A DNA stretch of 64,000 nt from Paramoeba atlantica (lineage: Eukaryota > Protista > Discosea). Every line of letters starts with the position of its first letter. Positions within the stretch are counted from its first letter, which is position 1. The notes below the pieces were generated by a model. The model was not told the origin of the DNA. It did not search any database and saw only the letters and a program-made list of their open reading frames with translations. The position numbers and the translations under genes are program-made. The stretch covers positions 1 to 64,000 of the forward strand of contig CDRNVI010000196.1 of NCBI GenBank assembly GCA_977017575.1, read 5' to 3'. Of this stretch, positions 2,952-61,540 are shown piece by piece.

Positions 2952-2983
<32 letters not shown>

Positions 2984-3096
2984 AAATAGCAAATTACTAT
3001 GGAATTCCAAATTTCCTTCTTCAAATTCGAGCCACCCAAAATGAATATCGAAATGCACTATCTTCCCCAGAAACTGTTTTAGGAGAAGAAGAATAA
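1..3096 (+). CDS. 3' part of a kexin/furin-like (proprotein convertase) type I membrane protein: P domain with PA-like insert, Pro/Thr stalk, Cys-rich segment, TM, short tail; 5' end outside window
   Basis: Spliced exons read QHVE|[11 protein letters not shown]|[18 protein letters not shown]|PR...[16 protein letters not shown]|GEWSLMMSD (furin P-domain pattern HVxVxxxIxHxxxGDLxIxLxSPxGT...WxFxSTxFWGExPxGxWxL). These are followed by SPSP/TPTP repeats (1975-2260), [13 protein letters not shown]|CCEDLFPFE|[27 protein letters not shown] and a last exon 2990-3096 ending LGEEE*. Confidence 0.8.
2740..2920. repeat. Intronic minisatellite (~18-19-bp ctctccacatattcttt-type units)
   Basis: About nine degenerate copies inside the intron after the TM exon of the first gene. 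Confidence 0.7.
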
Positions 3097-3384
3097 AATG
3101 ATTGTTTTCAAAAATAAAATTTTTTGTTTTCTTTCTTTTTGTTTTGTTGCGAAATTTTTGTTTTTTGTTGTTGGGGTCTTCTCTTTTGCCAAAATCTTCT
3201 CTCTCTCTCTCTCTCTCTCTCAATTTTGAACAAAATTTCAAACGTTTTTGTTTTCAAAAAAGTTTTTTTTTTTGGTTTTCCTTTTTGGTTATTTTTCGGT
3301 TTTTTTGGGGATTCGCCTTTCTTCCTCTTCTTCTCTCTTCTTTTCTTCTCTTCTTTTCTCTTCTCTTTCTTTCTTTTTGAGAAT

Positions 3385-3761
3385 GGACATGTTCGATTTG
3401 GAAGCAAGTCACAAAGATATTAAATTTGAGGGAGATGGGAAGCTCAAAATTTCCTTTCCCATGGGTCCTGCCAATCTTTATTTCTCTCCTCTCTTCTCTC
3501 CTTCTGAGGTTTTGAAAAAGAAAAAGAAAAGGAAAAGGAAATGAGAAAGAAAAGGAAAAGAAAAGGAAAAGGAAAGAAAAGAAATGAAAAAGGAAAGAGA
3601 AAGAAAAAGGGGAAAGAAAGAAAAAAGAGTAGAAAGAGAGAGAGAGAGAGAGACAAGTCATAACTTTTATCACAAAAAAAAGGGGTGTGGAAATGAGTCT
3701 TTTTCTTTCACAATCCAGCACAACAATTGCGTTGTTGTAGGTAATTTGGTTTTTTTTCTTC

Positions 3762-3794
<33 letters not shown>

Positions 3795-4030
3795 TCTCTC
3801 TCTCTCTTTCTTTCTCTCTCTCTCTCTCCTCTCCTCTCTCTCTCTCTTCTCTCTCTTTTGATCTCAGCTTTTGATTTGTTTTTCTTTATTTTGAAAAATG
3901 TTTGGAAGAGAGAATGGTTGTGGAGTACTCCAGAGAGTACTTCTCTTCCTTTCTTCTCTTCCTCTCTTTCTGTCATTGAATCGAGTTTTGCGGATCTCTC
4001 TCCAGAAAAGAGATACTTCCTTCTCTCTCT

Positions 4031-5177: not shown

Positions 5178-5431
5178 CTAATATGGAACACGAGAGGGAG
5201 GAGAAAGAATCACTTTACTTTGAGGGAAAAAAGTCGCCCAAATCAAATAAATAAGAAGAGAGAGAGAGAGAATAAGAAAGGTTGTTGGGAGGAGAGAGGG
5301 AGAAGAAGAAGAAGAAGAGAAGAGAGGGTGTGTGAGTTTGGAGGTGTAGAGAGATTTTTGGATTTCTCGGAGTTGTTGGTTTTCTTTGAGTGATTTTTCG
5401 TACTGGAAAAAGAAAATGAAATTTAGTAATG

Positions 5432-5468
<37 letters not shown>

Positions 5469-8400
5469 GTTGGAAAAAAATTGCAGAAAAGAAAAATTTT
5501 CATAAATAAAAAATAAAAAAAAAATAAAAATAAAAAATAAAAAAAATAAAAAAATAAATACCTTAACTAACAAATATTGATAATCAACATTCTCTTCCTC
5601 TTCTCTCTTCCTCTCTCTCTTTATCTCTCTCTCCATCTCTCCTCTCTCCCCCTCTCTCTCTTTCCTCTCTCTCTCCCTCTCCTTCTCTCTCTCTTCTCTC
5701 TCTCTCTCCCTCTCTTTCAATAAAAATTCATTCTCTCTCTTTTCTCTTCTTATCTCTTCCTCCAATTTCTCTCTCTCTTCTATCATTTCTCTCTTTCTCT
5801 CTTCCCATTTCTCTCTCTCTCTCTCTCTCCCTTCCTGAGCAACTCTGAGAACTGTTTCTACTTCTCTCTTATCTCTCTCTTCTCTATCTCTCTCTATTCC
5901 TCTCTCTCCTTTCTCTCTCTCTTTCTCAAAAATCCAATCTAATTTCTTTCTCTCCATCTCTTCTTGTTGTTCTCTTCTCTCTGTTTCTCTCTCTCTTTCT
6001 AATTTACTTAACATTTCCTTTAATTCTCTCGATTTCTCTCTTAAATCTTCTTTTATTCTCTCTTCTCCTCCTTTCTCTTTCTCTCTCTCTTCTCTTCTTC
6101 TTTTCTTCTCTTCTTCTTGTAGTTTTTCTCTTTCTTGAAGAAGTTGAATTTCATTTAAAAGTTCTTCTTCTCTTCTCTTCTTCTCTTCTTCTCTTCTTTG
6201 TCTCTCTTTGTCTCTCTCTTCTCTCTCTCTTTCTAATTCTCTCTCTGTTTCTTCTCTCCTTTCTTTTTCTTCTTGAGCTCGTTTCTCTTCTCTTCTCTTC
6301 TCTTCTTCTCTCTTCTCTCTTTCTATTTGCGCTTCTCTTCTCTCTTTCTCCAATTCTCCTCTCACTTCTCCAATCTCTTTCTCTTTCTCTCTTCTCTCCA
6401 TCTCTCTCTCTCCTCTCTCTTTCTCTCTCCCTCTCTTTCTTTCTTCCTCTCTCTCTTTCTCTTGTTCCTCTCTCTCTCTTGTCTCTCTCTCTATTCTGTG
6501 GAGTTCATCCACAAGTTTCTTAACCTTCTCATCTCTCTCTCCTCTCTCTCTCTCTCTCATCCTCTCTCTCTCTTCTTCAATTTTTCTCCTCTCTTCTTCA
6601 ATTTCTCTCTCTTTCTCTCTCTTCTCTTCTTCAATTCTCTCTCTCTCTTCTTGTGTCTTTCTCATCTCTTCTTCTACTCTCCCTTTCTCTTCTTCCATTC
6701 TCTCTTTCTCTCCTTTCATTCTCTCTTTCTCTTCCTCCATTCCTTTCTGAATCCTTTCAATTTCTCCTCTCTCTCTCTCCCTCTCTCCCTCTCTTCTCTT
6801 CTTCTCTTCTTCCATCTCTTTCTTCTCCTCTTCTACCTTCTTTACTTCTTCTTCTTTCTCTTTCTTCTCTCCTTCTAATTTCTCTCTCTCCTCTCTCAAG
6901 ATCCTCTTCTCTTCTTCTCTCTCTTTCTCTTTCTCTCTCTCCTCTGACAAAATTCTCTCTCTCTCCTCTTTCAATCTTATTTCTTTCTCTTTAATCTCTT
7001 TTCTGAGTCTCTCTCTCTCTTCATCGATTTCTTTTCTCTCTTCTTCTCTTCTCTCTCTCTCTTCTCCTCTTTCAACTTGGCTCTCTCTCTTCTCTTCTGC
7101 AATTCTATTTCTCTCTTCTTCCATCTCTCTCTCTCTTTCTTCTTTCTCTTTTCGAACTTCATTCTCTCTCTCTTCTTTCTCTTTTTTCCACTCTTCCTCT
7201 CTCTTTTCTTTCTCTTCTCTCATTCTCTCTTTTTCTCTTTCTGTCTCTTTTCTTCTTTCCTCAATCTCTCTTTCTCTCTCTTCAAATTCTCTCTCTTTCA
7301 CTTCTAATTCTCTCTCTCTCTCTTCTCTCATCCTATTCCTCTCTTCCACTTCTCTCTTTCTCTTTTCCTCTTCTCTCTCTCTTTCCTCCCTTTCCTCTCT
7401 CAATTTCCTCTCTTCTTCTTCACTTTCTTTCTTCTTCTCTCTCAGAATTCTCTCTTCTTCAGCAATTCCATTCTTCTCTTCTCCAACTCTCTCTCTCTCT
7501 CTCTCCATCTCTTCTCTCTCTCTCTCATATCTCTCTTTCTCTTCCTTCATTCCATCTCTTTCAATTCGTATTCCCTCTCTCTCTCTCTCTATTTCTTCCT
7601 TTTCGCTCTCTACAATCTCTCTCTCTTTCTCCACAGCCAAAATAACTTTTTGCATCTCTCCATAATCTTCTCTTCTCTCTCTCTCTTTTCTCTCTCTCTC
7701 TCTTTCTTCTTCTTTCTTCATCTCCTCTTCATCTTTTTGCAAAGACAATAATACATTTAAATAATTTTCTTGTTCTCTTCTCCTAAGCTCTCTCTCTTCT
7801 TCAATATTTCTCTCTTTTTCTTCTATCACTCTTTCTCTCTCTTCAATTTCTCTTTTCAATCCTTCATTTTCTTCCAAGAGTCGTTTTTTCTCCTTTTCCT
7901 TCTCTTCTTTCTCTCTCTCCTCTCTCTCTCCCTCTTCTTCAAAATCGAGTTGTCTTTTCGCTAACGAGGTAGGTTGTGAGAGAGATCTTTGAATAATAGG
8001 CTCTCCCGCTTCCTAGGATGGGAAGAAGAAAGTCAGAAGAGAGAAACAAGAAAGAGAAAAGAAATATATTTAAAAAATCTCTGAAAGAAAATAAAAAGAA
8101 AAAGAAAAAAAAATAATCACAAAAAAAATAAAAAAAAATAAAAATAAAAAAATAAAAAATAAAAAATAAAAAAAAAATAAAAAAAAAATAAAAAAAATAA
8201 AAAAAATAAATAAATAAAAAATAAAAAATAAAAAATAAAAAATACATAAGTTCTTTGGCGATTAGCAGTATCAAGAAAATGTTCAGAAGCATAAAGAGGA
8301 ACAATAATCTGGCAATTGAGAGGTTGTTTCTTTATATCAACATATGCTTCTCCAATTTTGTCATCGAGTATTGTGTCTGCGTCGAAACACTGTTGTTGAA

Positions 8401-13989: not shown

Positions 13990-16618
13990 TCAAGAATAAA
14001 GAAAACTATTACACATAGAATAACAAACAGCCATAAAAAAGAAAGTTTGCCCCAAAAAAAGAGAGACCATGACCCGTGGCGATTTTTCCATCATTTGAGA
14101 GAAAAGATTTTGAAATGCTTCAAATTCTCCTTCTTCTTCTTCTTCTTCTTCTTCTTCATCATCTTCTGATATTTCTTCTGTGTATTCTTCTTCTGTGTAT
14201 TCTTCTTCTGTGTATTCTTCTTCTGTGTACTCTTCTTCTGTATATTCGTCTTCTTCTTCTTCTTCTGTGTACTCTTCTTCCTCTGTGATTTCTTCTATGA
14301 TTTCTTCTGAGAATTCTTCTTCTTCTCCTTTTTCTTCTTTCATTTGCGATGTTTCCTCCCCTTTCAATTCCTCTTTGTCTCTCTCCTCTTCCCCTTTCTC
14401 TTCTCTTTTCAATTCCCCTTTTTCTTTCTCCTCTTCTCCTTTTTCTCTTTCTTCTTTCTTTTCTTCCAGTTTCCCTATTCTTTCATTTTCTGGTCCAACT
14501 TTTCCAGAGATGAATTTCTCTTTCCCTTTCATCTTACTTACAACAACACCTTCTTCATCATCATCATCTTCTTCTTCTGATTCTTCTTCAATAACTTCAA
14601 ATTTTTCTTCTTTTCCCAATCTTAATGTCAATCCATATTTGATCACTAAAAATTTTGTGAGAAGAGAAAAGAAGAGAAAGAAAAAAGGGAAAGAGGAGAA
14701 AGGAGAGAAGAAAAAATCGAACCATAGTACCAAATAGTGATTTGCGCAAATATTATCATCATAGCAAAAGTAACTAAAACCAAAAAAAAAATCAACCAAA
14801 AAGAAAAAAGAGAGAAAGAGAAAGAGAAAGAGAAAGAGAAAGAAAAAAGAGAAAGAAAAAAGAAAAAAAGAAAACAAACCAACAAAACCATTCAATTTTT
14901 TGTCTTTAACAGGACACCTCTCTTTTATACAACCCATACACTAAAAATAAAACATTTTGTTAGCTTTTTTTAAAACCTTTTTTTTTTGTTTATTTCTTAC
15001 AATTTGAAGAAATGGAAAATAAAAAATTGGATTGGGAAAAAGAGAGAAATGAAAAAACAAAACTTGATCGAATGGAATATTAAAGCAACACTGTCAAAAG
15101 AACGATCAAATGAGAATTGAACAATCAAAAGAAAATTAAATTAGAAAAAATATTAAAAAATAATTAAAAAATAGTAATAAAATAAATAATAAAATTGAAC
15201 ATGTTCACAAGTTTGACAAGTTTCCCCGACTTGGCAAGGACCATCATAAAGAATGGGAGTAGGAGAAGGAGAAGGAGAAGAGAGAGGAGAGGGAGAAGGG
15301 GAAGAGAGAAAGAGAGGAGAGGGAGAAGGGGAAGAGAGAGGAGAGGGAGAGGGGGAAGGGAGAGGAGAGGGGGAAAGAGAGGGGAAGGGAGAGGGAGAGA
15401 GAGAGGGGAGAGGAGAGGGGGAGTGAGAGGGAGAGGGGAGAGGAGAGGGAGAGGGGAAAGGAGAGGGAGAGGGGAGGGGGGAAGGAGAGGGGGAAGAGAG
15501 AGGAGAGGGGGATGGAATTGGAGAGGGGAATGGGGAAGGGGCTCCCCATGTTGGAGTTGGGGTTGGAAGAGGAAAGGGAGAGGGAGAAGAAGAAGGAAAG
15601 GGGAATGGAGAGGGGATTGGAGAGGGGAGAGAGGGGAGAGAGGGAGAGGGGAAGGGGGATGGAGATGGAAAGGGTGAGGGATGGGGGGAGGGGGAGGGGG
15701 AAGGAGAAGGTTCTGTTTTTAGTTTTGCTCCTAGGAATAGTTTGAGTTCTATTCGGGTTACTTGTCCCTGTTTTGTTTGGTTTTTTTTTTTAGAAGGAGA
15801 GAGGGAGAAGAGAGAGGGGAGAAAGAGAGAGGGGAAAAGAGAAAAAGGAAGGAAAGAAACATACCGAATCTTGACACAAAGTATCAGTGACTGTGACAAC
15901 CCAATTTCCCTAAAAAAGAAAAAGGAACTTAACAAAAGAAGAGAGAAGAGAGAGGGAGGAGAAAGAAAAGAGAAAGAATTACCACAAAACGTTCACCCCA
16001 AAAGAATGGGGTTGTGAATTTTGGTTTCCACTAAAAGAAAAAAAAATATTATTCTTTTATTCTTAATAATTTTTGAATCATAAAAAATATCAATTATTCT
16101 TAAATAAATTCTTTTTTTTTGTGTGTGTTTCAAAAAGAAAAGAAATCATAAATTATGATTCCAAAAAATAATAAAAAAATGGCATACTGAATTGGAGTCT
16201 AGTTTATGTTTGAGTGGAAATTTTCCTTCTGGTGTTAATTTCACATCTGTTCCAATAATTAAATAATAATTAAATGAAAATCAAAGATAAATTTTGAAGA
16301 AAAATAAAAGCCTAAAAAGAATAAAAGAATAAAAACAAAACAAAATAATAAAATAAAAAATTAAAAATTTAAAAAAACCATGTGTCTGAACATCACCAAC
16401 CAAATTCCTCAAAATAATTCGAAAAATCTCAGAATTAATCCCCAAAATAGGAAAAGAATAGAGCTCTAAATCCTTAAATTTTGGATGACTTTTAAAAGAT
16501 GGAAAAATTATCATTTTGAGATCATTTTCTCTTTTTGTATTGGTGAAAGATTTTGTGACTGTTGTGATCTGTGAAAGAAAAGAAAGAAAAATTAAAATTG
16601 CACTCAATAAAAATAAAT

Positions 16619-28511: not shown

Positions 28512-29290
28512 GAACAAAAAAAAAAGAAGACCAAAAAAAAAATTCTTTTTCTCTTGAATGTCAAAAGTGAAAGTTCTTCTCTGTTCCTTTCCTTCTCTTG
28601 GAACCAAGACAGTTCCTTCTCTTTCAATTATGATGTCCCTCTGAAGAGGACACCACAATCTGTGACAGATTTCTCTGCCAGATTGGTTTGATTTGATTTG
28701 ACCAACTTCGAAGTTTTTCAGTTGGGGAGGCATTTCTTTTTCGGTTTGGCTCTGGATTCTTTCTTCTGTTGGAGAGGATTCTTTATTCCGTTTTTCGTTT
28801 TCGGTTCCTCGTTCAACATTCCGAAAAACGAATTCAAAGTTCTTCGAAAATTCAAAGTCGGGAAATCACAAAATTCTCAGAGATGATGAAATTCATTTGG
28901 ATCAAATCTCTGATTTGACAAATGACACACAGAAAGCTGAAAAACAATTGGTTGAGGATATTTCTTCTTTTTTAAAAACCCGAACGGATATCGGTAAGGA
29001 AGATTGACATATTTGGACAGACAAATTTGGATTTTTGGGGAGAAGCGGTGTTCCCTTCAAAAGTACCTGACGAAAAGGGTAAAAATGGGGTTGCGGCGAC
29101 CTCCACAATCAAAAAATTCCAAAATCTTGGGGAACTTTGGGGGTCCCTGTTCTTGATTGCCGGCCTCTTTGGCCTCTCCATACCCTCCATTCAAATTAAC
29201 TATGAGAAAGTTCCATCAGGGTGTCACAGCCAAAAAAAATTCAAACCAGAAAAAAAATTGAAAGGAAAAATTCCGAATTCCAAAATTCCA

Positions 29291-31089
29291 ATGACGCGGA
29301 TCGTTCTTTGCCTTCTCTTCTTTTTCTCGTCTCTCTCTCTCCACGTCCTGGGTTCGTCTCATTCTGAAGCACCCGGAACTGCCAAAATTCCAAGCGCCGA
29401 TGCTGTTGATTTCTACATGTTTCGATCCTACGAGGATGACCGAGAGGATTACACAACTTTTATCTTGAATGCCTATCCACTCCAGGACCCGTTTGCTGGG
29501 CCAAACTATTTCGCGTTGAGTGACCAACACTTTTATCAATTCCACATCGACAATGACGGTGATGCAGTCTCGGATATCGACATTTCTTTTTACTTTGGGG
29601 CTCAGTTGGGAGGAGAGGAGTATCAAACACCCTTCGACCCGGAGTTCTGTGATTGCAATTCTGGTACCGTACCAGATGAAACCAAACACCATGGACTTAC
29701 CGTTGATATTTTGGATGCTGATGGTGTGTCTATCAATCATCCCCAATTTGTCCCATTGAAGTTTATTGGGCCAGTGAGCGGACCAGACGATGCAACCCTC
29801 AACTTCAAAGAGACTTTCCAAATCCGATGGACGCAAGGTGGTGTGGATACTGAGATCGAAAATCCGAGTGGAGGCTTCTCTTTCCCAAAGCCATTTGACT
29901 ACGCTGGAGAGAAAACTTTTGGGGATGCTGAAACTTATGAATCGTATGCTCGTTCGTTCATCCAGAGCTTTTCGATTCCTAATTGCGCAGAACAAGGAAA
30001 AGTATTTGTGGGTCAGAGAAAAGAGCCATTCCATATCAATCTCGGGAAAATCTTTGATTTGGTTAACTTTATCCCAATTCAAGACTTTATTGAGCAGAGC
30101 GATAATAATAATGATCTCAGATTTATTAGTACCACTTCTCTTGTCATCGAGTTGCCAACCTCGTGTGTTTTGGGTGCCTCAGACGTTATTGGAGCTTGGA
30201 CAACGGTTAACCAACTTTGTCATGCGGGTGCGGATCATGTTGTTGGAGAGCAGTTCTCTCGATTGGGTAATCCTCTTGTCAATGAGTTGGTGATTGGTTT
30301 GGAAAAGAAAAAGGACTTCAATCAACAACCTCCAACAGACGATGCAGCCTCTTTCTTGGACTTTGTTCAATTCCCCTCCTTCCCAGCGATTTTGGATTTG
30401 TTGTTCAGAGATGCGGTCAATGATGCAATGGGCACTGATATTAGCAATCTTGCTCCTAACAACTTACCAAGGAATGATTTGGTCACTGTCTTCCTCACCG
30501 GAATTGCAGGGCTCAACATGCCTCCTGATCCAAACTTTATGGCTTCCGAAATGATGCGATTGAACACAACTGTCCCTCCAACAAAGAGGCAAAATCAAGA
30601 ACATTTGGGTATGTTATTTTCTTTTTTTTTCTTTCTTTTTTGCTTGTTTTGAGATATTTTTCTTGATTTTTTGCTTCAAATGAAAATTTTTCCTCCTCCT
30701 TCCTTGTTGGGTGCTGATTTTTCGAAAATTGAATAGGTTTGATTGGTGGAGATAGTGCTGGATTCCCGAATGGACGTCGACCTGGAGATGATGTGGTCGA
30801 TATTGTGTTGCGAGTGGCAATGGGAGTTCTTTGTTATTTAACTGATTTATGTGAAGAAGGCAATGCGCCTGTAGGAAATGTCCTGTTTACGGATGGAGCC
30901 CCTCTGACAGCGAGCGATTTTGATGATGAATTCCCTTATTTAAGGACACCAGTTCCAGGGTCCCCTTTCCCTGGGAGTGGGACTCCGTCTCCGTCTCCAT
31001 CCTCTTCCAGTGCAAATCTGTTGTCAGTCTCGACAAGCCTCTTTCTTGTTGCTCCTCTTTTGGCGATTTTGAATTTGTTCTGGTTTTAA
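29291..31089 (+). CDS. DUF4331 family secreted protein with probable GPI-anchor signal; one intron (30609-30736)
   Basis: Signal peptide followed by SSHSEAP...DAVDFYMFRS (DUF4331 SSHREAP..D.TD.YAFRS). Also YQFHIDNDGD, VFVGQRKEPF, QFSRLGNPLVNE and GFPNGRRPGDDVVDI, ending in a Ser-rich spacer plus hydrophobic tail LLSVSTSLFLVAPLLAILNLFWF*. Confidence 0.85.
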
Positions 31090-35055: not shown

Positions 35056-36588
35056 TCATTCTCTTGGATTTAGTTTTCTTTTTTTTCTTGCTGGCTTGAT
35101 ATTTTTCCCCTAAAATAGTAAAATGAATTAGTTTCACAAAAAGAAAATTGGAACAAAAAAGAGTAAAGGAAAATTTAAACAATTGATTTGTTGAATAATT
35201 CAATAATTTCTTCATCATCTGTCATGTCAAAGACTGTATCCCCATCCTGTTCAACACAAAAAAGAAAAAGAAGTTCAAAAAAGAAATATCCACCGCTCAA
35301 AATCATTCAATCAATTGAACATTCAAATTAGAACTCAAAAATATCAATAAAAAAAAGATAAAAATACTTCGTTTTGAATACCAATCTGAGCTCCATGTTC
35401 AACCAATATTTCCACAACTTCTTTCTCTTTACTGGAAACAGCAGAGTGAAGAGGCGTACATCCATCCTAACACAAATCAATAAAATCAAACAAAGAAAAG
35501 AAAGATTATATTTCCTTTGATGGCAACCCCCCCAATTCAAAACAAAAACAGAACATCAAAATAAGGATGTTAATAAAAAAAGATAAAAAATACCTTGTTT
35601 TGGATATCAATCTTTGCTCCATGTTCAACAAGAAATTTCAATACTTCTTCAAAACCATTGGTCGCAGCAAAGTGAAGAGGGGTATTTCCAGCCTAACAAA
35701 AAGTTAAAATAAACCAAAATAGAAATTAAACATCAAAAATAAGATTAAAAAAAAAGATAAAATCAAAACTTCATTTTGAAGATTAACACTAGCTCCACAT
35801 TTCACAAGAAATTTCACAATTTCACTCAAATCCTCCCAAACAGCAAAATGAAGAGGGGTATCTCCGTCCTAACAAAAAATCAAAACAAACCAAAATAGAA
35901 ATCAAACATCAAAAAGAAGACAAAAAAAAAAGATAAAATCAAAACTTCATTTTGAAGATTAACACTAGCTCCACATTTCACAAAAAATTTCACAATTTCT
36001 TCACAACCATTGGTCGCAGCAAAGTGAAGAGGGGTATTTCCAGCCTAACAAAAAGTCAAAACAAACCAAAATAGAAATCAAACATCAAAAAGAAGACCAA
36101 AAAAAAAAAGATAAAATCAAAACTTCATTTGGAAGATCAATCTTAGCTCCATGTGCAACAAGAAATTCCACAATTCCTTTCAAACTGGTATCCTTTCGAG
36201 CAGCGAAGTGAAGAGGGGTATTTCCAAGCTAACAAAAAAAACAAAATAGATAATAAAAAAAAGATAAAAAAAACAAATAAAAATTTTAAATAAAATCAAA
36301 AATACTCTGTTTTGAAGATCAATCTCAGCTCCATGTTCAACCAATATTTTCACAACTCTCTCAAACCCTCCCAAGCAGCCCAATGAAGAGGGGTATTTTC
36401 ACCCTAACAAAATCAACCAAAATCAAACAAAGAAAAGAAAAAGAAGAGATCTTTTTGTAATTCACAAAAGAGATAACCGCATCTTTGCAATTAAAATCGA
36501 TTTCTTGTGTTTGGAGAATCTCTTTCACAACTTCTTCATCTCCATGTTCAATTGCATCAAAAAGCTTCTTTTCTGAGCCATCCGCCAT
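35056..36588 (-). CDS. Ankyrin-repeat protein (copy C), near-identical to copy B plus one extra repeat exon
   Basis: MADGSEKKLFDAIEHGDEE, six internal TPLH exons, and the same terminal exons as copy B. Confidence 0.8.
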
Positions 36589-37082: not shown

Positions 37083-40000
37083 TCAACAACAAAAGCATTT
37101 TTTCTCCCTTCGATAAGAGATAACCAACTCTGGATAACCTTGACAATTATCATAGACAATATATTCTCGATATTTATCGACATCTGCAATTACCGAATCT
37201 AATAAACGGTCTCCTGATTTTGGTGGTCTTCTCTGAAAGGGAGAGAAAGATTGTTAAAAACAAGAAAAGAGAAAAGAGAAAAAGAAAAAGAAAAAGAAAA
37301 AAGGAAATAAAAGAGAAAAAAAAAAAAAAAACAAAAAACAAAAAACAAAAAAACAAAAAAACAAAAAAACAAAAAAACAAAAAAACAAAAAAAAAAAACA
37401 AAACTTGATTTCGAAGATAACGATTAGTAAGACAAGGAGAACCAACAACAACACGAGAAAAGATAACATGACGGAGACCTTCACGATCATCATCACAATA
37501 TTTATCACTCTTTTCTATATCATCTGTAAAGTAAATTCCTGATCCGTATTTTCCATCTAGTGATGATACTCGACAATCAAACCCCTTTTTTAATAAGAGA
37601 AGAGAGAGAGAAAGGGAGAGAAAGAGGAGAGAAAAAGAAAAGAAAAAGAAAATCAATCTAAGAATGTTTTCTGTTTTAAATAATAATAAAAATAATTGAA
37701 CCGAAATAATAAGAATAAAAATAATAATCATTTAAAAAAGAGAAAAAAAAACTCTCAACAATAAATAAATAAATAAATAAAATAAAATAAAATAAAATAA
37801 AATAAAATAAAAAATAATACTTCACGATAAACAAGAGGAGCAGCACGAGCACTCGTACCATGAAGTAACATAACTTCTCGAATTCCACGATCTAATTCAA
37901 ACTCTTTGTTCATCCAATCTGCCATTGTTTTCACATCTATTGGTTTCTGAAAAAAATGAAAAAGAAAAAAAAAAAAATTATTAATTTGTGGAAAAAAGTT
38001 AGGGAGGAAAAATGTTGATTCTTAAATCGTTTTTTTTGTTGATTCTTAAATCGTTTCTTTGTTAATTTTAAAAAATGTAATACCCCTCCCCCACCCCCCT
38101 ATCTATTTTAAAAAGAAAAATAAAGAAATAATAATTAAAAAAAACCGCTAAATGACGCTTCTGAGCAATCAACTCTCTTGTCAAATGATATCTCCTCCAA
38201 AGATCAGGATTTTCAACTCGATGAATCATCACAATCTCTCCACCAACTCCTTCCACAATCCAAGACAATCGATCAATAAAATCATCTGTCACATCAATCA
38301 ACTGGAACGTGACCGATTCTTCTTCTTGTTCAAGTTCCCAATAAACAGGGAGAGGGACTGCAGTGAGAACAGAGCTTGTCCTCACAACCTCTCTCTTCTC
38401 TTCATGTTGGATAAGAGGGAGCCCTTCAACCATCATTTCATCTTCATCTCGCAAATAATCAAGAGTACGAGGTCGTTCTTTCTTTGTACAGCAGGCACAA
38501 CATCCACAACATGCTGCACAGAATGTTCCAAGGACAGCGAATTTCTCTGCAAAGACACAAACAAGAATTGAAGCAATGACAAGAACGAGAACACCAGCTG
38601 CTGTTGCCCCAACAACAACTGGGTCTGTGTAGAACTTCTCTGGAGGAGAAGGAGAAGGAGAAGGAGAAGGGAAAGGAGAAGGAGAAGGAGAAGGAATTGG
38701 AGAAGAAGTAGGACTTGGTACAGGAGATGGTGAAGGGATGGGGGATGGTGAGGAAGAGGGGGATGGTGAGGGAGAAGGAATAGGAGAAGGAGAAGGAGTT
38801 GGGGTTGGAGTGGGGGTTGGTGTAGGGGTTGGAGTAGGAGTTGGAGTTGGAGTTGGAGTTGGAGTTGGAGTGGGGGTCGGGGTGGGAGTTGGAGTTGGAG
38901 TTGGAGTTGGAGTGGGAGTGGGAGTGGGAGTAGGAGTCAAAGTCGGAGTAGGAGTAGGAGTTGGAGTTGGAGTTGGGGTAGGGGTAGGGGATGGTGAGGG
39001 AGAACCACCAATGCAAGGGAGGCACAAAGAATTTTCTTCCGCAGAACAACAAGGAGGAACAGGACAAGAAAAATCATTGTCCCGAAGATCATAGTCTGTG
39101 ATGCTACAAATCCAAGACCCAATGAGACCAGTCAAGGAGTTATCTTTCAAATATCTAAAAAAGAGAAAAGAAGAAAGTATGAGCGGAGACACAAAAAATA
39201 AAAATCAAGAAAGCAATCTTACAATTTTGTCAAAGAATTTGGTCCATTCCATGGTAAATCTCCTATGAGATGATTCTGATCCAAATTTCTAAAAAAAAAA
39301 AAAAAGAGAGAATATAAACAAAAAAGAAAAGATTCAAAAAAAAAAGGAGATGAAAAAAATCAAACAGCGAAGTTAGGCTTTGAAGAGTTGAATAAGATTT
39401 GGGAATGGCACCACTAAACCGGTTCGAACTGAGATCCCTGTTCATCCACAAAACCATTCAGGTATATTTTTTAAAGGAAGGAAAAAAGAAAGGAAGGAAA
39501 TGAATACACAGTTCGAACTGAAAGGAAACTAAGATCAGGAAGAGTGTTTTGGAAACTATTGCTGTGCAGATCACTACAAACAAGAAGAGAAATTAATAAA
39601 TAAAACAAAAGAGAAAAAAGAAAAGAAAGAATCCCAGACAGGGTCTCAAGCTCACGGAGATTCCCCAATTGAAAATTAAAGGATCCAAAAATTGAATTCT
39701 TGTGCAAATCACTATTTTTTTTTTTGAACTTTGAATTTTCTGGCATGAGAAAGAAAAAGAAAAAGAAAGAAAAAAAGGGACATGATGGTGGCATGGCTCA
39801 AATACGCGAGAGATGGTTGGATAACTCCTGACAACCGATTGTCGGAGAGTTGTCTGCACAATTGGAGAAATTACAAACAAGAAAGAAAAAGAAAAAAGAA
39901 AAGAAAAAAACTGACAATTGTTTCACAACAGGGTTCCTAGAGTTGGTACAAGTGACGCCATGCCAACCACTTGCACATGGTTCGCCTACAAAAGAAAGAA

Positions 40001-40463
40001 AAGAAAGAAAAGAAAGAAAGAAAAGAAAGAAAGAGTCAAAAAAGATGATGGGGCAAAGCTGGGGAATCGAACCCGCGCACCTTTTTCCCTTTTCTCTGAT
40101 AAAAAACAAACAGAAAAAAATGACATTCAAAGTTAAAAATCCAAAACCTGACATCCAATTTCTCTTATTCTTCCAACTTGCTCCATTTGTAGATGTGTAG
40201 AGATCCGTCAAGGCTTTTTTGATTGAAAAGTCAAAAAGAAAAAATCTCTTCCAGAGAAAAAAAAAAAAGGGAAATATAAAAGTAAAAAATTATGAAAAGA
40301 GAAAAAAAAGAAACCTGTCTTTTCATCACTAGATTGGGCAAGCACCACTGGGAAACAAAGTGAGAAAATCAAAAAAGAGAGAGAAAGAAAAAGAAAAAGA
40401 AAAAGAAAAACCAGAACCGCCCAAAAAAAGAAGAAAAAAGAGGGACCGAACGAGAGAGAACAT
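37083..40463 (-). CDS. LRR receptor-like PARP: signal, plant-type LRRNT cap, LRRs, Pro/Thr stalk, TM, Cys cluster, cytoplasmic PARP catalytic domain (start codon uncertain, ~40463-40483)
   Basis: [23 protein letters not shown]|[12 protein letters not shown]; LRR exons [51 protein letters not shown]. The same large exon carries the stalk, [26 protein letters not shown] and [13 protein letters not shown]. Then [63 protein letters not shown], ending REKKCFCC*. Confidence 0.85.
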
Positions 40464-41018: not shown

Positions 41019-44000
41019 TCAACCAAATAATCTTGCTCTTGCAACTTCAACAATTATTTTCTCTCTCAAATAAGGCATATGTTTTTGTCGAAAGGTAAAA
41101 GGAGCGTCTCGACTGCAAAAATCTGCAAACATACAAGCAAAGATGCCACAATCATATCCATTCTTAAAGGAACGAGTCAGATAAGAAAAAACTCACACAA
41201 AGAGGAAAGGAAAGAGAAAAAGGAAAGAGAAAAAGGAAAAAGAAGAAAGACCTCTTGTTTGGGGATATCTTGAGGTTGATACTCAGTCCAGCCAGTAATA
41301 TCAAACACGCCTTTCTTTTTGTCTTTGTATTCTTCTTCCAAATATTTTCTCATCAACTACAAAAAAAAAAGAATCGAGAAAAAAGATTGTAAGATAAGAT
41401 CGGACCAAATAAAAAACAAAAATATAATCAGATAAAATAAGAGAAAAAATAAAAAGAGAAAAAAAAAGTAAATAATAAATAATAATAATAAAGAGATAAA
41501 AAATGATCAATAAAAATAAAACATTCTGAGAATTAAAAACAATCAGACCTGAATACATTTATAATTAGGACTTCCCATTGAATCATAATATTCAAATTTT
41601 TTATCTCGCAAATTAATGACCGCAGTACACCAATGATTCCCCAAATGAACAGGAAAAATAACTTTGTCCATTTCAAATATATCCACATTTGCCTGTTCAA
41701 GAGATTTTGAGAAGAAAGAAAGAAAGAAAGAGAAAAGAGAAAAGAAAGAGAGAAAGAGAAAGAGAAAAGATTTATGATAAAGAAGAAAGAGAAAAGAAGA
41801 GAAAAATGACGAAATTGTAAAGAAGAGAACGACCTTTGTTGACCATCTCCGAACCCGAGCATAACCTTTCTGATACAAAGTATAAAAGAAAGAGTTATAA
41901 AAGAGACACTTTGTCGTTGAATTTGTGCTCCTCTCTTTTAGCATTGAGAGATAAAAGTTGATCACCTGAGAAAAAGATCAGAAAGAGAAGAAAAGAAAAG
42001 AGAGGGAATGAATATTCGATCGGAATAACTTTTTGACAAAAAACGACAAAAAGAGGTGAAAAGAAAAAAAAAAAGAGCAAGAGAGAAGAAAGAGAAAGAA
42101 AGAGAAAGAAAGAGAAAGAAAGAGAAAGAAAGAGAAAGAAAGAGAATGAAAGAGAATGAAAGAGAAGAAAAGAGAAGAAAAAAAAACTGACCTCATCATT
42201 CAACCATTCATAACCAGAAAGACGTTGAACATCCGAAACTGTCAATTCAATATCCCCATGATTTGAGACAATTTCATGTTCTGCTCTTCTAAGAGTCCGT
42301 TGAACAAGATTTTGTTCTTCATCTATTATTATTATTTGAGTGAGAAGGGAAAGAGAGAGAGAGAGAGAGGAAAGAGAGAAATGAGATGTTAGAGGAGGAA
42401 CAAAAAAAAGAAAAGAGACAAAAAAAAGGAAACCACTGAGAATGGGAAATTGCGGTCCAAAAAGGCCAGCGAGAGCTCTTCTCTTCTTCTCTTCTGCTTC
42501 TCTCTTTTTTCTTTCTTCTTCCACCTGGGGAGGGATCAAAGTTAGTTCTTCATTTTTCCTCTTCTTATTTTCTCTCTCTTTTTCTCTCTCTTTTTCTCTT
42601 TTGAACAAAAAAAAAAGTTACGATTAATCTTCGAGCAAGATTTCTCTCCAGAGCTCTTTTCTCGGACTGTAAAAAGAAAAATAAGAAAATGAGAAAAGAG
42701 ACAGAGAAAGAGAAAAAAATAAGGAGGGGAAGAAACAAAGAAAAGAGAAGAAAAGAGAAAAATTAAAAAAATTTTAAAAAAAACCTCTTTCGAGATCTCC
42801 TTGACAGTCTTCATAGCACTTAATTCTCTCTTCATTCTCTCGAGTTCTTCTCTTCTCTCATCTCTTTTCCTTTGAAGAGGAGTAAAAGTTCTCTCAAAAG
42901 CACCAATTTTCTCTTCCCTGGAAAAACAAAGAAATAGTTAAAATCACAAAGAGAAAAGCGCAAAAGAAAAGAGAGAGAGAAAAAGGAAAAAAGAAAAGAA
43001 GAGAGAGTGTGAACCAATCTTCTAGGACAACAGGACGACGATATTCTTCTTCTTCAAAGAGAAGAGGGGCCAATGGAACACGAGAGGTAGAAGAAGAAGA
43101 ATTTGTCTCTTTTCGTTGTTGTGGTCTTGTTGAAGAAGAGAAATTTGCCTCTTTTCGTTGTTGTGGTCTTGTTGAAGAAGAGGTAGAAGAGAGAGAAGAA
43201 GAGGAGGAGGAAACAGAAGATTGAGAGGAAAGAAGAGTGGAAAAAGGAGAAGCTTTTCTCTTTCTTTTCTGAATTGAGAGAGGATCAGGAAGAGAGAGTG
43301 GAGATCGTTGATAAGAGAGAGAAGAAGAGAGAGAAGAAGAATGAAGATAAGTTTGTTGAGGAGAAGAGGAGGAGGAGGGAGGCTGAGAAGGTGGGGAGAG
43401 AAAAGGAGATGGAGAAGAAGAAGAAGGAGATTGCGAAGATGGAGAGAGAAAAGGGAGACCGTTTTGTGTGGGAGGAGAAGAGGGAGGAGAAAAAGGAGAA
43501 GAGATAGAAGAAGAAGAAGGAGAGAGAGAGGGAGAGGAAGAAGGAGAGGGAGAAGGAGAGCGAGGGGGAGAGAAACAAAGCAAACGACTTGGATCAACTA
43601 AGGAGAAAGTAGAAGAAGGAGCTTTTCTTCGAGAAGAGAGAGAAGAGACAGAAGAGACAGGAATAGAAGGGATTGTTGAAGAAGGAGAAGAATGATGATA
43701 GGAAAGAGAGAGAGGAGAAGGAGAGGAAATTAGAGGAGAAGCAAGAGGAGAGAATAGTTTTTGTTGAGAGGCAGAGAGATTATAAAGAGAAGACGTTCTA
43801 TGAGAAGAAGAAAAGGGAGAGGGAGAGAAGGAAGGAGAAGGAGAGAAAGAAGAAGGAGGAAGAAGAGAAGAAGAAGAAGAAGAGAGAGGATGACGACGAG
43901 AAGGAAGATGAGAAGAAGAAGAAGAAGAAGAAGAAGGAATATCAAAATTCATCGGACAATTAAATTCTCTTTCCATTTTTTGATCAAATGCGATTTTTCC

Positions 44001-45787: not shown

Positions 45788-48505
<2,718 letters not shown>

Positions 48506-57239: not shown

Positions 57240-59756
57240 ATGATTCACTTTTTGCTGGTCTCTTCTCTTTTCTTTTTTTCTTTTTTGGTGTTGAATGGTG
57301 ACCAAACAAATAGTTTTCTCTTTTGTTTGTTTTTTGTCCAGTACACGGAGCTTCAAGTGCTGAGACACAAGGTTTTCTCTCTTTCTCTCTCTCTCTTTTT
57401 CTCCCTCTCTCCTTTCCTTTCTCTCTTCCCCTTTTCTCTCTCTCTTTCTCATAATCTTTTGAAAAGCTTTGACCAATTTTTACACTTCAACAAATGGCGC
57501 AAATTGGACATTCAACAAAGGATGGTTGAGTGGTGATCCTTGTTCTGGTAATTGGCTTGGTGTTGGATGTAGTCAAAACTCCAATGTTATCTTTTTGTAT
57601 GTTCCTTTTTTTCTTTTTTCTTTTTTGATATTTTCTTTTTTTTTCTTTTGGTTTTTTGTTCAAAGTGTTTTTTTGTTCTCTTTTTTCTCTCTCTTGTTCT
57701 CATTTTTTATTCAATTTTTCAAAAGGAGTTTGAGACAAAACAATTTAGTTGGAACAATTCCCTCTGATTTTGGATCTCTGTCAAATTTGACCCGCTTGTA
57801 TGCGTTTTTTCTTTTTTTTCTTCCTTTTTTTCTTGATTCTTTTTCATTTTATTATTTCAAATTATGTTTTTATCAATATATTGATTCCTATAAAAAATTG
57901 ATCCTTTTTTATAGGAATTTGGAGGACAATTCTTTGTATGGCGACGTTCCTTCTTCTTTTTCCCAACTTACAAACTTGGAGAATTTGTATTTTTTTTTTT
58001 TTTAAAAACAATTTATTTCGATAATCTAAATTATCTTCCTTTTGGTTCTGTGAATAATTCTTGTTTTTTCTTTTCTTTTCTTTATTCTTTCTTTTTGATA
58101 GGGTTCTTACTTCAAATTCATTGAGTGGAGAAATTTTTGAAATTCTTGGATCAACAACTCAATTGGGTCTCATGTATATTTTTCTTTTTCTTTTTCTTTT
58201 CTTTTTCTCTTTCTTTTGTGATTCATTAAAAATGAAAAAAAAAGATTTTTCGCCCACAACAAGTTTACAGGAACGATCCCCACTCAAATCGGGAACACAT
58301 TTCTTTTTGACTTGTAAGATTTTTCATTTCTTTTATTTATTCTTCATTTTTTTCTGTTCTTTTTTTCAAGTGATTTTCATTGTTTTGTCTTCTTTCCTCC
58401 TTTCTCATTTTTCTCTTCAAATCATTTTAGGTATTTGGAGCATAACTCTTTCTCTGGATCAGTTCCGACTACACTTGGAACATTAGGAAATGGAGGACTT
58501 TTCGATATGTTTGTTATTTGTTATTTTTGTTTTTATATTTGTTTCTAAAACTAAATGGGCTCAATTATCTTTCTTTTCTGCTTTCTCTTTTTCTTTGTTT
58601 CTCCCTTTTTTCTTTTCTTTTCTTTTAGTTACCTCAATCATAACCAATTGTCGGGATCACTCCCAACTGAAATAGGGCTCCTTACAAATGCTTTTGATCT
58701 GTTATTTTTTCTCTTTTATTATAAAGCTATTTTTAAGTTTTAATTTTTCACTAATGTCTTTTTTCTTTTCTTTTCTTTTAGTTACCTCAATGATAACCAA
58801 TTATCAGGATCACTTCCAACTGAAATAGGGAATTGGCAGAATATTTTTCAAGTGTATTTCTTTCTTTCAGTTATTCTTGTTGTTGTTTTTGTTTTAATAC
58901 AAAAAGAGAGAAAAAAAGCAATAGAAGAAAAGAGAAATTTGAAGAGAAATTTTTTTTTGTTTGATTTTTTTTTTTCATTCTTTCTCTCTTTTCTTTTTTT
59001 ATAGACGTTTGCATAACAACCAATTCTCTGGCTCACTTCCAACTGAAATTGCAAATATTAGTCCTTTTGAAATGTACAATTTTCATTCTTTTCTCCCTCT
59101 TTCTTCTCATTTCTTTATTAACTTATTCTTTTTTAGGAGTCTCAATAACAACGCATTTGAAGGAGATATTCCTGCAATGAGTTCACCTTTTAGATTGTAT
59201 GATATTTCTTTCAAATTTCTCTCTCTAACCGCTTTTTTTTTTTGTTCTCTTATGATTTTTTCTTTCTTTCTGATCTTTCTTTTAGATTTATGCAACACAA
59301 CAAATTTACAGGAACATTTCCACAATCTCTCTTCGATACTTTTACTTTGTATAATTTTTTTTTTTTAAATTTAATTATTTTCTTTTATGTCTTCTTTTTC
59401 AATTTAAAATTTCCTTTCCCTTGTTCTTCTCTTTCCTCTTTTCTTTTGCTTAGGGATCTTTCTCATAATTCACTGAAAGGAACAATTCCATCAAGCCAGT
59501 TTGGTCCTGTAAATTTGTAATTTCCTTTTTAAACTTTTTTTACAATTCCTTCAACATCCTAAAAAAAAATGTGATCAGGCGAGCAGCAAATAATTTTTTC
59601 AGTGGTTCAATTGAAAATGCTGATTGGCTTTGTGAAGTTGAATATCTTGATCTGAGTGGCAATTTCATTGAATGTCCCCTTCTATCTTGTTGTTCTGAAA
59701 AGGGGAATGGTGGTTGTGTTATGAGTCCTGATCTCCCATGCTATCCTTCTTCATAG
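57240..59756 (+). CDS. Secreted plant-type LRR protein (LRRNT cap, ~12 LRR exons, Cys C-cap, no TM)
   Basis: ALTNFYTSTNGANWTFNKGWLSGDPCSGNWLGVGC. Exons such as 57726-57797 (72 nt, SLRQNNLVGTIPSDFGSLSNLTRL), YLNHNQLSGSLPTEIG and DLSHNSLKGTIP. Ends LDLSGNFIECPLLSCC...PCYPSS. Confidence 0.85.
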
Positions 59757-60302: not shown

Positions 60303-61540
60303 ATGACTGACGTTTCGCAAAATCTTTTTGCTGCGATTGGTGAGGGAGATGAACGACTTGTGAAAGATCTTCTTCAAAAACAAGAAAGCATTCTGAACTT
60401 TCAAACTGAGGTTTTTTTCTTTTTGTTTCTTTCTTTCTTTCGAGTTTGTTTGATTGGTTGCTGTGATAGTCCGGATTTTCCCCTTTTCATCAAGCTGCTT
60501 TGGTCGGTAGAGAAGAAATTGCGAAAATTTTGGTTCAATATGGCGCTAAGATTGATATTCAAAAAGAAGTTTTGATTCTTTTTTTTTCTTGACATTCTCT
60601 TTTGTTTTGAAATGGGTGTTGTTAATTGTTGATTCCTTTTTTTTGTGAAGGATGGGGTGGTTCCTCTCCACCTCGCTGCTGAATTGCGCAGAGAAGAAAT
60701 GGTGAAATTTTTGATTGAGGATGGAGCAAAGATTGATATTCAAGACAATGTTTTGATTCTTTTTTTTTCTTGTCCTTCTCTTTTGTTGAAAACAAAAGAA
60801 CCAAAGGAGTGTTGTTTTGTTTGTTTGTCGGTCTAATCTCATTTTCTTTTCTTTGTTTTTGCTGGTTTGTGTTAGGAAGGATTTACCCCTCTCCACTATG
60901 CTGCGCTTGAAGGTTTTGAAGACATCACGGAAATTTTGGTTAAACATGGAGCTAATCTTGATCTTCAAGATCAAGTTTTTATTTTTTATCTTTTTTTATT
61001 GATGTTCTATTTTGTATTCACACAAACAACAAACAACACTCCATCTTTTGATCTTTTCTGTTGACACTCCCCCAATTCAAAACAATCTCAAATATTGTCT
61101 CATTTTCTTTTCTTTTCTTAATTTTATTGATTTGGAATTTAGAATAAAGCTACCCCTCTTCATTATGCTGCTGAAGAAGGTTTTGAAGAAATTGTGGAAC
61201 TTTTGGTTTCACATGGAGCAAAGATTGATATTCAAAATGAAGTATTTTGATTTTATCTTTGTTGACATTATTTGAAAGTGTTTTTAATGTTTGGATTGAT
61301 TGGTTGATTGATTTGTAGTGTGAGGATGGAGTGTGGATATTTTTTTTTAAAACTCTTATTAGGATTATCAAACAGTCTTTGAGATTGCAAAAAATCAACA
61401 AATTGTTGAATTGATCAACGCATTAAACGTTTGATTTTCCCTTTTTATTTTCTTTTCACATTTTTTGAATTTTAATCTTCATTTTTTTTTGATCACAGAG
61501 GAAAAATATCAAACCAGCAAAAATTGCTGGTTTGAACTGA
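60303..61540 (+). CDS. Ankyrin-repeat protein (subtelomeric paralog of the same family)
   Basis: MTDVSQNLFAAIGEGDERLVKDLL, exons SGFSPFHQAA, DGVVPLHLAAE, FTPLHYAAL, KATPLHYAAE, DYQTVFEIAK. Ends RKNIKPAKIAGLN*. Confidence 0.8.

Follow-up and report, generated by a model that had tools for sequence, protein, structure and literature searches.

A 13-exon gene lies on the minus strand at positions 40463-37083 of the window, the whole 64,000-nucleotide stretch of Paramoeba atlantica DNA that was analyzed. Its 12 introns (62 to 236 nt) are all of the GT-AG type, and translation of the spliced model (2034 coding nt), from an ATG in exon 1 (40463-40461) to a TGA in exon 13 (37085-37083), gives a product of 677 amino acids with no internal stop. 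The first three introns are in phase 1, the six LRR introns in phase 2, and the last three in phase 0, the PARP exons being joined in phase 0 as the earlier note on this DNA had proposed. That note had also read a series of domains from the in-frame splice, namely, a signal peptide, a plant-type LRRNT cap, LRR exons, a Cys cap, a Pro/Thr stalk, a transmembrane (TM) helix, a juxtamembrane Cys cluster, and a PARP domain; the stop-free model reproduces the series with every part in its place.

Exon 1 (40412 to 40463) carries the initiator ATG and the hydrophobic core of the signal peptide and is followed by a GT donor, while exon 2 (40315 to 40347), bounded by an AG acceptor and a GT donor and in phase 1 on both sides, completes the signal peptide and probably contains its cleavage region. 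The spliced N terminus resembles a signal peptide ending in VVLAQ. The N-terminal LRR cap is divided between exon 3 (40148 to 40213; first half, with an NW motif) and exon 4 (39916 to 39985; second half, with the Cys pair C54 and C63 in W.GVTC). Exons 5 to 9 (39853-39782, 39711-39640, 39573-39508, 39437-39366, and 39288-39223) each encode one LRR in 66 to 72 nt. Exon 10 (39154-38146; 1009 nt), within a 374-codon open reading frame (39192-38068), runs in a single frame from the last LRRs through the Cys cap and stalk to the TM helix, and on through the Cys cluster and an acidic linker into the N-terminal strands of the PARP domain. The stalk, TM helix, and N-terminal PARP segment thus share an exon, as had been claimed, and the LRR-TM-PARP fusion does not depend on splice prediction, because the join sits inside exon 10 alone. 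The rest of the PARP domain follows in exon 11 (37821 to 37946), with the catalytic His in LLHGT; exon 12 (37405 to 37584), the PARP core, with G.GIYF and, in K-S-D-K-Y, the Ser and second Tyr of the pocket; and exon 13 (37083 to 37232), which holds the catalytic Glu in YREYIVY together with a YPE motif, the conserved KK-C..C tail, and the stop. The gene is intact and encodes a predicted type I membrane protein of 677 amino acids with LRRs outside and a PARP domain inside.

A second LRR gene begins at 57240 on the plus strand. Its first exon is similar to exon 1 of the PARP gene, and its cap (57466-57594) is 49% identical to amino acids 29 to 71 (exons 3 and 4). This paralogue stops directly after the cap and lacks a PARP domain, which suggests that LRR ectodomains in this genome also work without an output domain. 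An ankyrin gene lies just downstream of the PARP gene. A single tankyrase-like gene comprising both was considered and rejected, since between the two lie a stop codon, a spacer of ∼500 nt, an AATAAA, and another ATG; moreover, the same ankyrin gene also follows the PARP-less LRR paralogue, which argues against its being joined to the PARP gene.

Ectodomain, stalk, and membrane segment

The LRR array consists of about seven repeats of 22 to 24 residues, in register with the exons and of the plant-specific type, and exons 5 to 9 each follow the pattern L.L..N.(L/F).G.(I)P...L..L. Scored as single exons or pieces, single repeats gave 12 to 16 bits against Pfam LRR_1, below the cut-off of 20.6, with 13 bits for a repeat from exons 5 to 9. 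For the cap, the Cys-pair motif of the plant type can be read in the sequence, but scores against PF08263 (LRRNT_2) stay below its cut-off of 20.7, at 12.8 bits for exon 4 as a single exon (profile positions 32 to 41) and 13.4 bits for the paralogue's uninterrupted cap. The low LRRNT_2 score is due in part to the scoring of single exons alone.

Beyond the array lies a C-terminal LRR cap (39013 to 39093, minus strand; amino acids 211 to 237) with six Cys residues. Its pattern, CP.P.CC...C.PC, is found upstream of the stalk in this gene and in two homologues, L001 and L004, represented by transcript contigs in JGI 3300017225. The stalk itself (38641 to 39003; amino acids 241 to 361) is mucin- or extensin-like, with 58 Pro, 33 Thr, and 24 Ser in 121 residues, and Ser/Pro stalks occupy the equivalent place in L001 and L004. 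The TM helix (38551 to 38622; amino acids 368 to 391) reaches a Kyte-Doolittle value of 2.74 over 19 residues, the hydropathy maximum of the protein. The PARP domain is predicted to be cytoplasmic because basic residues (KKERPR) flank the helix on its C-terminal side. A juxtamembrane cluster of 7 Cys in 11 residues (38488 to 38520; amino acids 402 to 412), present at the equivalent place in L001, L004, and a third homologue, P0007, is probably a site of S-acylation. A linker of ∼45 amino acids, acidic and poorly conserved, separates the membrane side from the PARP domain. No N-glycosylation sequon was found in the ectodomain; this is unusual for a surface receptor and counts against a receptor function.

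PARP domain and its family

The N-terminal part of the PARP domain (38146 to 38352) reads LP.YW ... IDVT ... HRVEN..LW..Y, and these columns are invariant across five relatives. The N-terminal strand lines up with that of PARP12 and PARP15, and the Pfam PARP match in P0007 (profile positions 24 to 197) starts at the equivalent VHRVEN strand. The catalytic residues are H555 (37862-37860), in the same column as 24 other PARP rows; Y586 (37533-37531), in G.GIYF; and E651 (37166-37164), in YREYIVY. The His and Glu codons, read directly off the sequence, are those previously assigned. Together with S594 and Y597, the three residues align with the columns of 20 or more H-Y-E PARPs, and the domain retains all the NAD+-pocket residues checked (His, Tyr, Ser, Tyr, and Glu).

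Profile and structure searches agree on the class of the domain. Exon 12 alone scored 27.6 bits against PF00644, above the gathering score of 26.7 (E, 2.4e-6), which bears out the PARP assignment, and homologues scored 46.9 and 50.1 bits. Against the PDB, exon 12 aligned to ZAP, tankyrase-2, RCD1, and PARP4, -12, -14, and -1, while exons 12 and 13 were colinear on tankyrase-1 (about positions 93 to 122 and 185 to 207 of the same chains), the catalytic Glu falling opposite that of tankyrase-1; exon 11 alone gave no PDB match. AlphaFold was run on P0007, which is 41 to 52% identical to the exons of the window gene, with a 32-row alignment (an earlier 11-row alignment gave a pLDDT of 50). Over most of the PARP part the model has a pLDDT of 84 to 95. 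It matches PARP12 best (TM score, 0.85; rmsd, 2.8 Å), the PARP12/14/15/10 group at 0.77 to 0.85, and tankyrase at 0.70 to 0.73, with E values of about 1e-14 for both groups. An ART/PARP fold is therefore predicted by proxy of this homologue's model, rather than of a model of the window's own protein, and the likeness to tankyrase suspected earlier holds at the level of fold within the same limit.

What the active site says about the product is less specific than had been supposed. The earlier note took the H-Y-E triad as that of poly-ADP-ribosylating PARPs, which is an overstatement: PARP3 and PARP4 are H-Y-E enzymes and yet mono-transferases, and in one paralogue Gln replaces the catalytic Glu. 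The product may be mono- or poly-ADP-ribose, and, given the Gln paralogue, the family members need not all be active alike.

An exhaustive HMMER scan returned five genuine matches, including the window's own open reading frame, and none of the five bears the name of a PARP or LRR protein. In L004, a 1795-nt transcript contig with one intron retained, spliced LRRs are followed by cap and stalk, then by the TM helix and Cys cluster, and finally by an H-Y-E PARP domain; L001 carries the cap, stalk, TM helix, Cys cluster, and complete PARP domain on one contig. An environmental relative, L003, bears a different ectodomain of 700 amino acids, possibly beta-helical, atop the same stalk, TM helix, and PARP N terminus. 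The four PARP exons of the window gene tile the intronless transcript homologues, continuously across the last two junctions (YRE|GF and ...Q|RR); the first PARP junction falls in a variable linker. The C-terminal KK-C..C motif is common to the window gene, L001, L004, and P0007. In a tree, the four family members group together with 100/97 support, and the ANK-SAM-PARP rows make up a clade of their own (100/100). These relatives constitute a small, divergent PARP clade in which all members lie behind a predicted stalk and TM helix, and at least one of them has, by its sequence, exchanged the LRRs for another ectodomain. Other searches added little. A homologous-protein search with the large exon found nothing within a length range of 208 to 661 amino acids, outside which the 677-amino-acid product falls; a search for related loci with the family alignment confirmed nothing in a collection that evidently does not hold the sample of L001 and L004; and an Atlas search returned generic PARP clusters only (score, 0.67).

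Comparison with known receptors and ADP-ribosyltransferases

In its outer part the protein resembles plant LRR-RLKs and RLPs (e.g., FLS2 and BRI1). Type I topology with a single TM helix is common to both, as are the signal peptide, the Cys-pair cap at the N terminus, the 24-residue L..L.L..N.LSG.IP repeats, and a second Cys cap after the repeats. The protein differs in having only about seven repeats, a sub-threshold LRRNT_2 match, and a 121-amino-acid Pro/Thr/Ser stalk between cap and membrane. Plant ectodomains of this type are coupled to kinases in LRR-RLKs, whereas the cytoplasmic part here is neither a kinase, to which no match was found, nor a short tail but a PARP domain. Toll-like receptors (LRR-TM-TIR) likewise place LRRs outside the cell and, beyond one TM helix, a cytoplasmic domain belonging to a superfamily that handles NAD+, but their LRRs are of another class and the fold and chemistry of TIR and ART domains are unrelated.

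PARP16 (ARTD15), which to our knowledge is the sole animal PARP reported to span a membrane, likewise uses a single TM helix to keep its catalytic domain on the cytoplasmic side. PARP16 is tail anchored, with the TM helix after the catalytic domain, almost no lumenal part, an ARTD15_N helical domain, and no catalytic Glu. In the window protein, by contrast, the TM helix (amino acids 368 to 391) precedes the PARP domain, the ectodomain comprises ∼360 amino acids, H-Y-E is intact, and PF18084 (ARTD15_N) found no match in the window exons or the homologue. The protein is also unlike the ecto-ARTs (ARTC), which have an R-S-E active site and extracellular catalysis; this class was rejected, since the active site is H-Y-E and the domain lies C terminal to the TM helix, on the side of the basic residues.

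The label “tankyrase/PARP12 type” in the earlier note applies only loosely; the domain has no helical regulatory domain, is equally distant from PARP12/14/15/10 and from tankyrase, and belongs to its own clade. Tankyrases (PARP5a/b) also combine an H-Y-E PARP domain with the absence of a helical regulatory domain, but the window protein has no ankyrin clusters and no SAM (neither ANK nor SAM was found by Pfam in the large exon), it falls in a separate clade from ANK-SAM-PARP sequences, and its PARP domain lacks the zinc-binding insertion of the tankyrase-like and WWE-PARP rows. PARP12/14/15/10 provide the family's best sequence (37 bits) and fold matches and have in common with it the LP..W ... 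R.EN..LW strand-helix. Unlike the window protein, however, they have Ile or Leu for the catalytic Glu, are soluble, and carry zinc-finger, WWE, or macro domains, and identity to their catalytic domains is only about 20 to 24%.

In agreement with the earlier note, which knew of no characterized LRR-TM-PARP, no description of this architecture was found in the literature searched. The only co-occurrence of LRR and PARP found there is in plant NLRs with an integrated PARP domain. Such NB-LRR proteins are cytoplasmic and lack both a signal peptide and a TM helix, and the PARP domain in them is seen as a decoy of inactive PARPs of the RCD1 type (Sarris et al. 2016, PMC4759884).

Proposed signaling by ADP-ribosylation

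By analogy with receptor kinases and tankyrase, we propose, with a probability of roughly 0.6, that the protein is a receptor in which ligand-driven clustering turns on the PARP domain, so that the signal would cross the membrane by ADP-ribosylation. The stalk would hold the LRR array off the surface, and acylation of the Cys cluster, and perhaps of the C-terminal KK-C..C, would keep the catalytic domain at the inner face of the membrane. An extracellular ligand bound to the LRRs would gather receptors, whose PARP domains could then modify one another and nearby proteins, using NAD+. Such switching by proximity would follow the principle of receptor kinases and tankyrase, with ADP-ribosylation in place of phosphorylation as the transmembrane signal. 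Tankyrase activity depends on polymerization, and this proximity or polymerization control is a plausible model for activation here.

Alternatively, the protein could be a constitutive membrane-anchored ADP-ribosyltransferase, in which the TM helix and the acylated Cys residues do no more than position the enzyme, like the tail anchor of PARP16 at the ER, and the LRRs and stalk serve adhesion, surface structure, or sorting, with no signal passed. Exchange of the ectodomain within the family (LRRs in L001 and L004 but another in L003) and the LRR-only paralogue in the same window are consistent with this, as are the long mucin-like stalk and variable acidic linker, which offer no obvious rigid coupling. 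We nevertheless consider it unlikely: single-pass receptors generally signal by clustering, for which, as established for receptor kinases, rigid coupling is not needed, and receptor families likewise swap ectodomains on a constant output module.

A surface-triggered NAD+ consumer is less probable still. Such a protein would mainly hydrolyze or deplete NAD+ near the membrane as a defense or cell death switch, comparable to TIR-domain NADases (SARM1 and plant TIR receptors). The NAD+ pocket is complete and the LRR-TM-catalytic layout parallels that of Toll-like receptors, but it is established that H-Y-E PARP family enzymes transfer ADP-ribose to acceptors, pure NADase activity not being a known mode, and no evidence ties the gene to infection. 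That the gene is unexpressed, decaying, or misjoined, its LRR and PARP exons not being used together in the organism, is very improbable: an exact 24-mer from exon 10 had no match in a metagenome and transcriptome contig collection and only 22% of sampled words were present in one probable RNA run, but the coding sequence is free of stops over 13 exons with canonical splice sites throughout, the key join lies within one exon, the catalytic residues are all retained, and homologues are transcribed with the same layout.

Clustering-driven ADP-ribosylation is the preferred reading. Of the characterized eukaryotic PARPs known to us, PARP16 is tail anchored and the others are soluble, and none has an extracellular sensing domain; likewise, we know of surface receptors with kinase, phosphatase, guanylate cyclase, or TIR output but of none with an ADP-ribosyltransferase. 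More tentatively, the protein could be the first receptor-type ADP-ribosyltransferase, one of a family of single-pass receptors in which exchangeable ectodomains (LRR and possibly beta-helix) are joined to a clustering-activated H-Y-E PARP that signals via ADP-ribosylation or local use of NAD+.

If the domain is active and controlled by the ectodomain, ADP-ribosylation would join the short list of direct receptor chemistries, and the protein would offer a natural and genetically simple system (one chain and one TM helix) for PARP switching by proximity. The gene also shows that separate eukaryotic lineages have joined LRR ectodomains of the plant-specific type to very unlike outputs. Even if read conservatively, the family represents a PARP clade that is both new and divergent, with a predicted architecture that is new as well.

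Gene structure and predicted topology

Reading of the minus strand, with exons joined at canonical sites, gives a PARP gene of 13 exons, with a coding sequence of 2034 nt (ATG at 40463 to TGA at 37085-37083) that has no internal stops and encodes 677 amino acids. All 12 introns (62 to 236 nt each) are GT-AG. Introns at the locus are 74% pyrimidine on the sense strand, with a GC content of 0.24 versus 0.43 in exons; the window as a whole (GC, 0.22 to 0.42) is that of an AT-rich eukaryotic genome.

As read from the sequence, the product begins with a hydrophobic signal peptide and an N-terminal cap with a Cys pair, followed by an array of about seven LRRs of 22 to 24 residues (L.L..N.(L/F)SG.IP...L..L) and a six-Cys cap. 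A stalk of 121 residues, 95% of them Pro, Thr, or Ser, leads to a transmembrane helix (amino acids 368 to 391), the only strongly hydrophobic helix. Beyond it lie a Cys cluster (7 Cys in 11 residues), basic residues, an acidic linker, and a PARP domain that extends to the C terminus. Five LRRs occupy one exon apiece (66 to 72 nt, phase-2 introns), and this uniformity of size and phase makes a chance origin of the pattern hard to sustain. The earlier note held that the fusion of LRRs to PARP does not depend on splicing, and this is borne out by exon 10 (39154-38146, minus strand). Contained in a 374-codon open frame, it alone encodes, in a single frame, the last LRRs, cap, stalk, transmembrane helix, Cys cluster, and the PARP start, LP.YW...IDVT...HRVEN..LW..Y. 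Three features determine the predicted topology, with LRRs and stalk outside the cell and the PARP domain inside, where NAD+ is: a signal peptide, capped LRRs, and basic residues C-terminal to the helix.

Directly upstream of the PARP gene (41543-42608, minus strand) are exons that by eye resemble a Ulp1/SENP-type cysteine protease (...HW...IN...).

Identity and fold of the PARP domain

Several lines of evidence identify the catalytic domain. First, the LP.YW...HRVEN..LW..Y segment of exon 10 is part of it: in P0007, the protein of the homologous transcript-like contig L006, the Pfam PARP profile (positions 24 to 197 of 199) starts precisely at the strand equivalent to ...VHRVEN, PARP12 and PARP15 align in register with the segment, and its columns are invariant in five relatives. 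Second, exon 12 alone scores 27.6 bits against PF00644 (E = 2.4e-6), above the gathering score, and aligns to ZAP, tankyrase-2, RCD1, and PARP4/12/14/1 in a search of solved structures. Exon 13 aligns to tankyrase-1 residues 185 to 207, its Glu matched to the catalytic one, and exon 12 to about residues 93 to 122 of the same chains, so that exon order is kept along tankyrase-1. Third, a 32-row alignment puts the His, Tyr, Ser, Tyr, and Glu of the window exons in columns shared with >20 H-Y-E PARPs. The catalytic His (37862-37860) and Glu (37166-37164) codons lie where the earlier note had placed them, with the Tyr at 37533-37531 (all minus strand). The H-Y-E triad is necessary but not sufficient for ADP-ribose chain elongation, and the product could therefore be either mono- or poly-ADP-ribose.

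P0007, with the 32-row alignment, served as a proxy for the window's own spliced domain in AlphaFold modeling, and pLDDT was 84 to 95 across most of the PARP part. Foldseek matches were exclusively PARP catalytic domains (all E about 1e-14); the tankyrase match suggested in the earlier note was obtained (TM, 0.70 to 0.73), with higher values for PARP14/15/10 (0.77 to 0.82) and PARP12 (0.85; rmsd, 2.8 Å). Sequence scores place the family at an equal distance from PARP12/15/14 (37 bits) and from tankyrase (34 bits), and it lacks the zinc-binding insertion that is present in tankyrase-like and WWE-PARP rows. In a maximum-likelihood tree, the window domain and three transcript homologues form a clade (support, 100/97) on a long stem, separate from ANK-SAM-PARP, WWE-PARP, and rotifer zinc-finger PARP sequences.

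Homologues and transcript searches

The piece from the transmembrane helix to the PARP start, run exhaustively with HMMER against 1.84 billion representative proteins, gave six matches: the window's own genomic open reading frame, a repeat protein (E = 2.9e-5; five short repeat stretches) that was discounted, and four real relatives. All four are singleton clusters, one with an unrelated automatic name (pentapeptide repeats) and the rest unnamed, and three derive from transcript-like contigs of a single JGI sample (3300017225). L004 (1795 nt) encodes in one frame two spliced LRRs, Cys cap, Ser/Pro stalk, transmembrane helix, Cys cluster, and PARP domain, interrupted solely by a retained GT-AG, CT-rich intron, beyond which the reading frame continues with LLHG, GIYF, and YNEYVVYD. 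The intron-free L001 (1557 nt) encodes LRR cap, stalk, helix, Cys cluster, and a complete PARP domain (Pfam PARP, 46.9 bits) with an H-Y-Q triad. L006 covers the end of the helix, the Cys cluster, and an H-Y-E PARP domain. Exon GC (0.41 to 0.44) and intron style in the three contigs are as in the window; their source is probably the same organism or a relative of it.

Aligned to P0007 and L001, the four PARP exons of the window follow one another end to end, without gap or overlap at the last two splice junctions; the first falls in a variable linker. This tiling independently validates the last three introns. Among sequencing runs, one that is probably RNA contained 22% of the words sampled, and four others, of unknown kind, contained 42 to 87%; in the metagenome collection, neither an exact exon word of the gene nor the family pattern had a match, and no transcript of the gene itself came up there. 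A silent or decaying locus is unlikely.

Proposed mechanism and modularity

The membrane-adjacent Cys cluster is a motif of the S-acylated kind and may be acylated. A C-terminal KK-C..C (37083-37100, minus strand), within the last eight residues and common to all four family members (this gene, L001, L004, and L006), could be an acylation site or half of a metal site. If both were S-acylated, they would hold both ends of the catalytic domain on the bilayer. Most likely, ligand-driven clustering would activate the enzyme, followed by auto- and trans-ADP-ribosylation. Alternatively, the protein could be a constitutive, membrane-anchored transferase whose ectodomain serves adhesion or sorting, or an NAD+ consumer triggered at the cell surface. 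We assign the whole package, architecture plus clustering-activated ADP-ribosylation receptor, a probability of about 0.6; the LRR-stalk-helix-PARP architecture itself is much more certain.

A second LRR gene (about 57240-59756, plus strand) has the same cap type (49% identical) and one repeat per exon (about 10 single-LRR exons). Its C-terminal Cys cap is followed immediately by a stop codon, apparently making it a secreted paralogue that lacks an output domain. Just downstream of each LRR gene is an ankyrin-repeat gene with one repeat per exon (35176-36585, minus strand, and about 60304-61300, plus strand; 65 to 79% nucleotide identity between repeats), so that the window holds an inverted duplicated pair, in which just one LRR gene carries the stalk-helix-PARP extension. 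Additional Pro/Thr/Ser stalk-like tracts of at least 100 residues, followed by C...C..C (1750-2343, plus strand, and 15153-15935, minus strand), suggest that surface proteins of this genome commonly use mucin-like stalks as a module. Elsewhere in the window are exons of the highly conserved S-adenosylhomocysteine hydrolase, recognized by eye (about 47024-48100, plus strand), a single-helix-like charged repeat of almost exclusively Glu, Arg, and Lys in an 899-codon frame (5178-7877, minus strand), and an intronless 541-codon frame amid intron-rich genes (29027-30652, plus strand). The last appears to resemble a family of secreted proteins of bacterial type (DUF4331-like) and could have been acquired by gene transfer.

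Full-text literature searches (PARP with LRR, receptor, ectodomain, or transmembrane), short of a systematic architecture query, found no LRR-TM-PARP protein, in agreement with the earlier note, which knew of no characterized example. A 2010 survey of PARP families across eukaryotes (PMC2964712) makes no mention of LRRs, signal peptides, or extracellular regions, and the sole co-occurrence of LRR and PARP found was the integrated PARP domain that certain cytoplasmic plant NLRs carry (PMC4759884). Profile searches turned up PARP relatives of the WWE, zinc-finger, and ANK-SAM types, none with LRRs, and in the Atlas the nearest clusters are plain PARP ones. As far as these searches go, the protein appears to join two known kinds, LRR receptor and PARP enzyme, in a new combination, and is not categorically new.

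The fourth relative from the HMMER scan, on a 4-kb environmental contig (L003; JGI sample 3300073655), has a different ectodomain of about 700 amino acids, then a Pro/Thr stalk, transmembrane helix, and the same PARP N terminus. Its intron-free 863-codon exon (1354-3942, plus strand) encodes a repetitive, N-glycosylation-rich ectodomain that matched no Pfam family; Atlas gave only weak leads, to right-handed beta-helix proteins. This other ectodomain on the same stalk-helix-PARP start indicates that the output module is constant and the ectodomain exchangeable.
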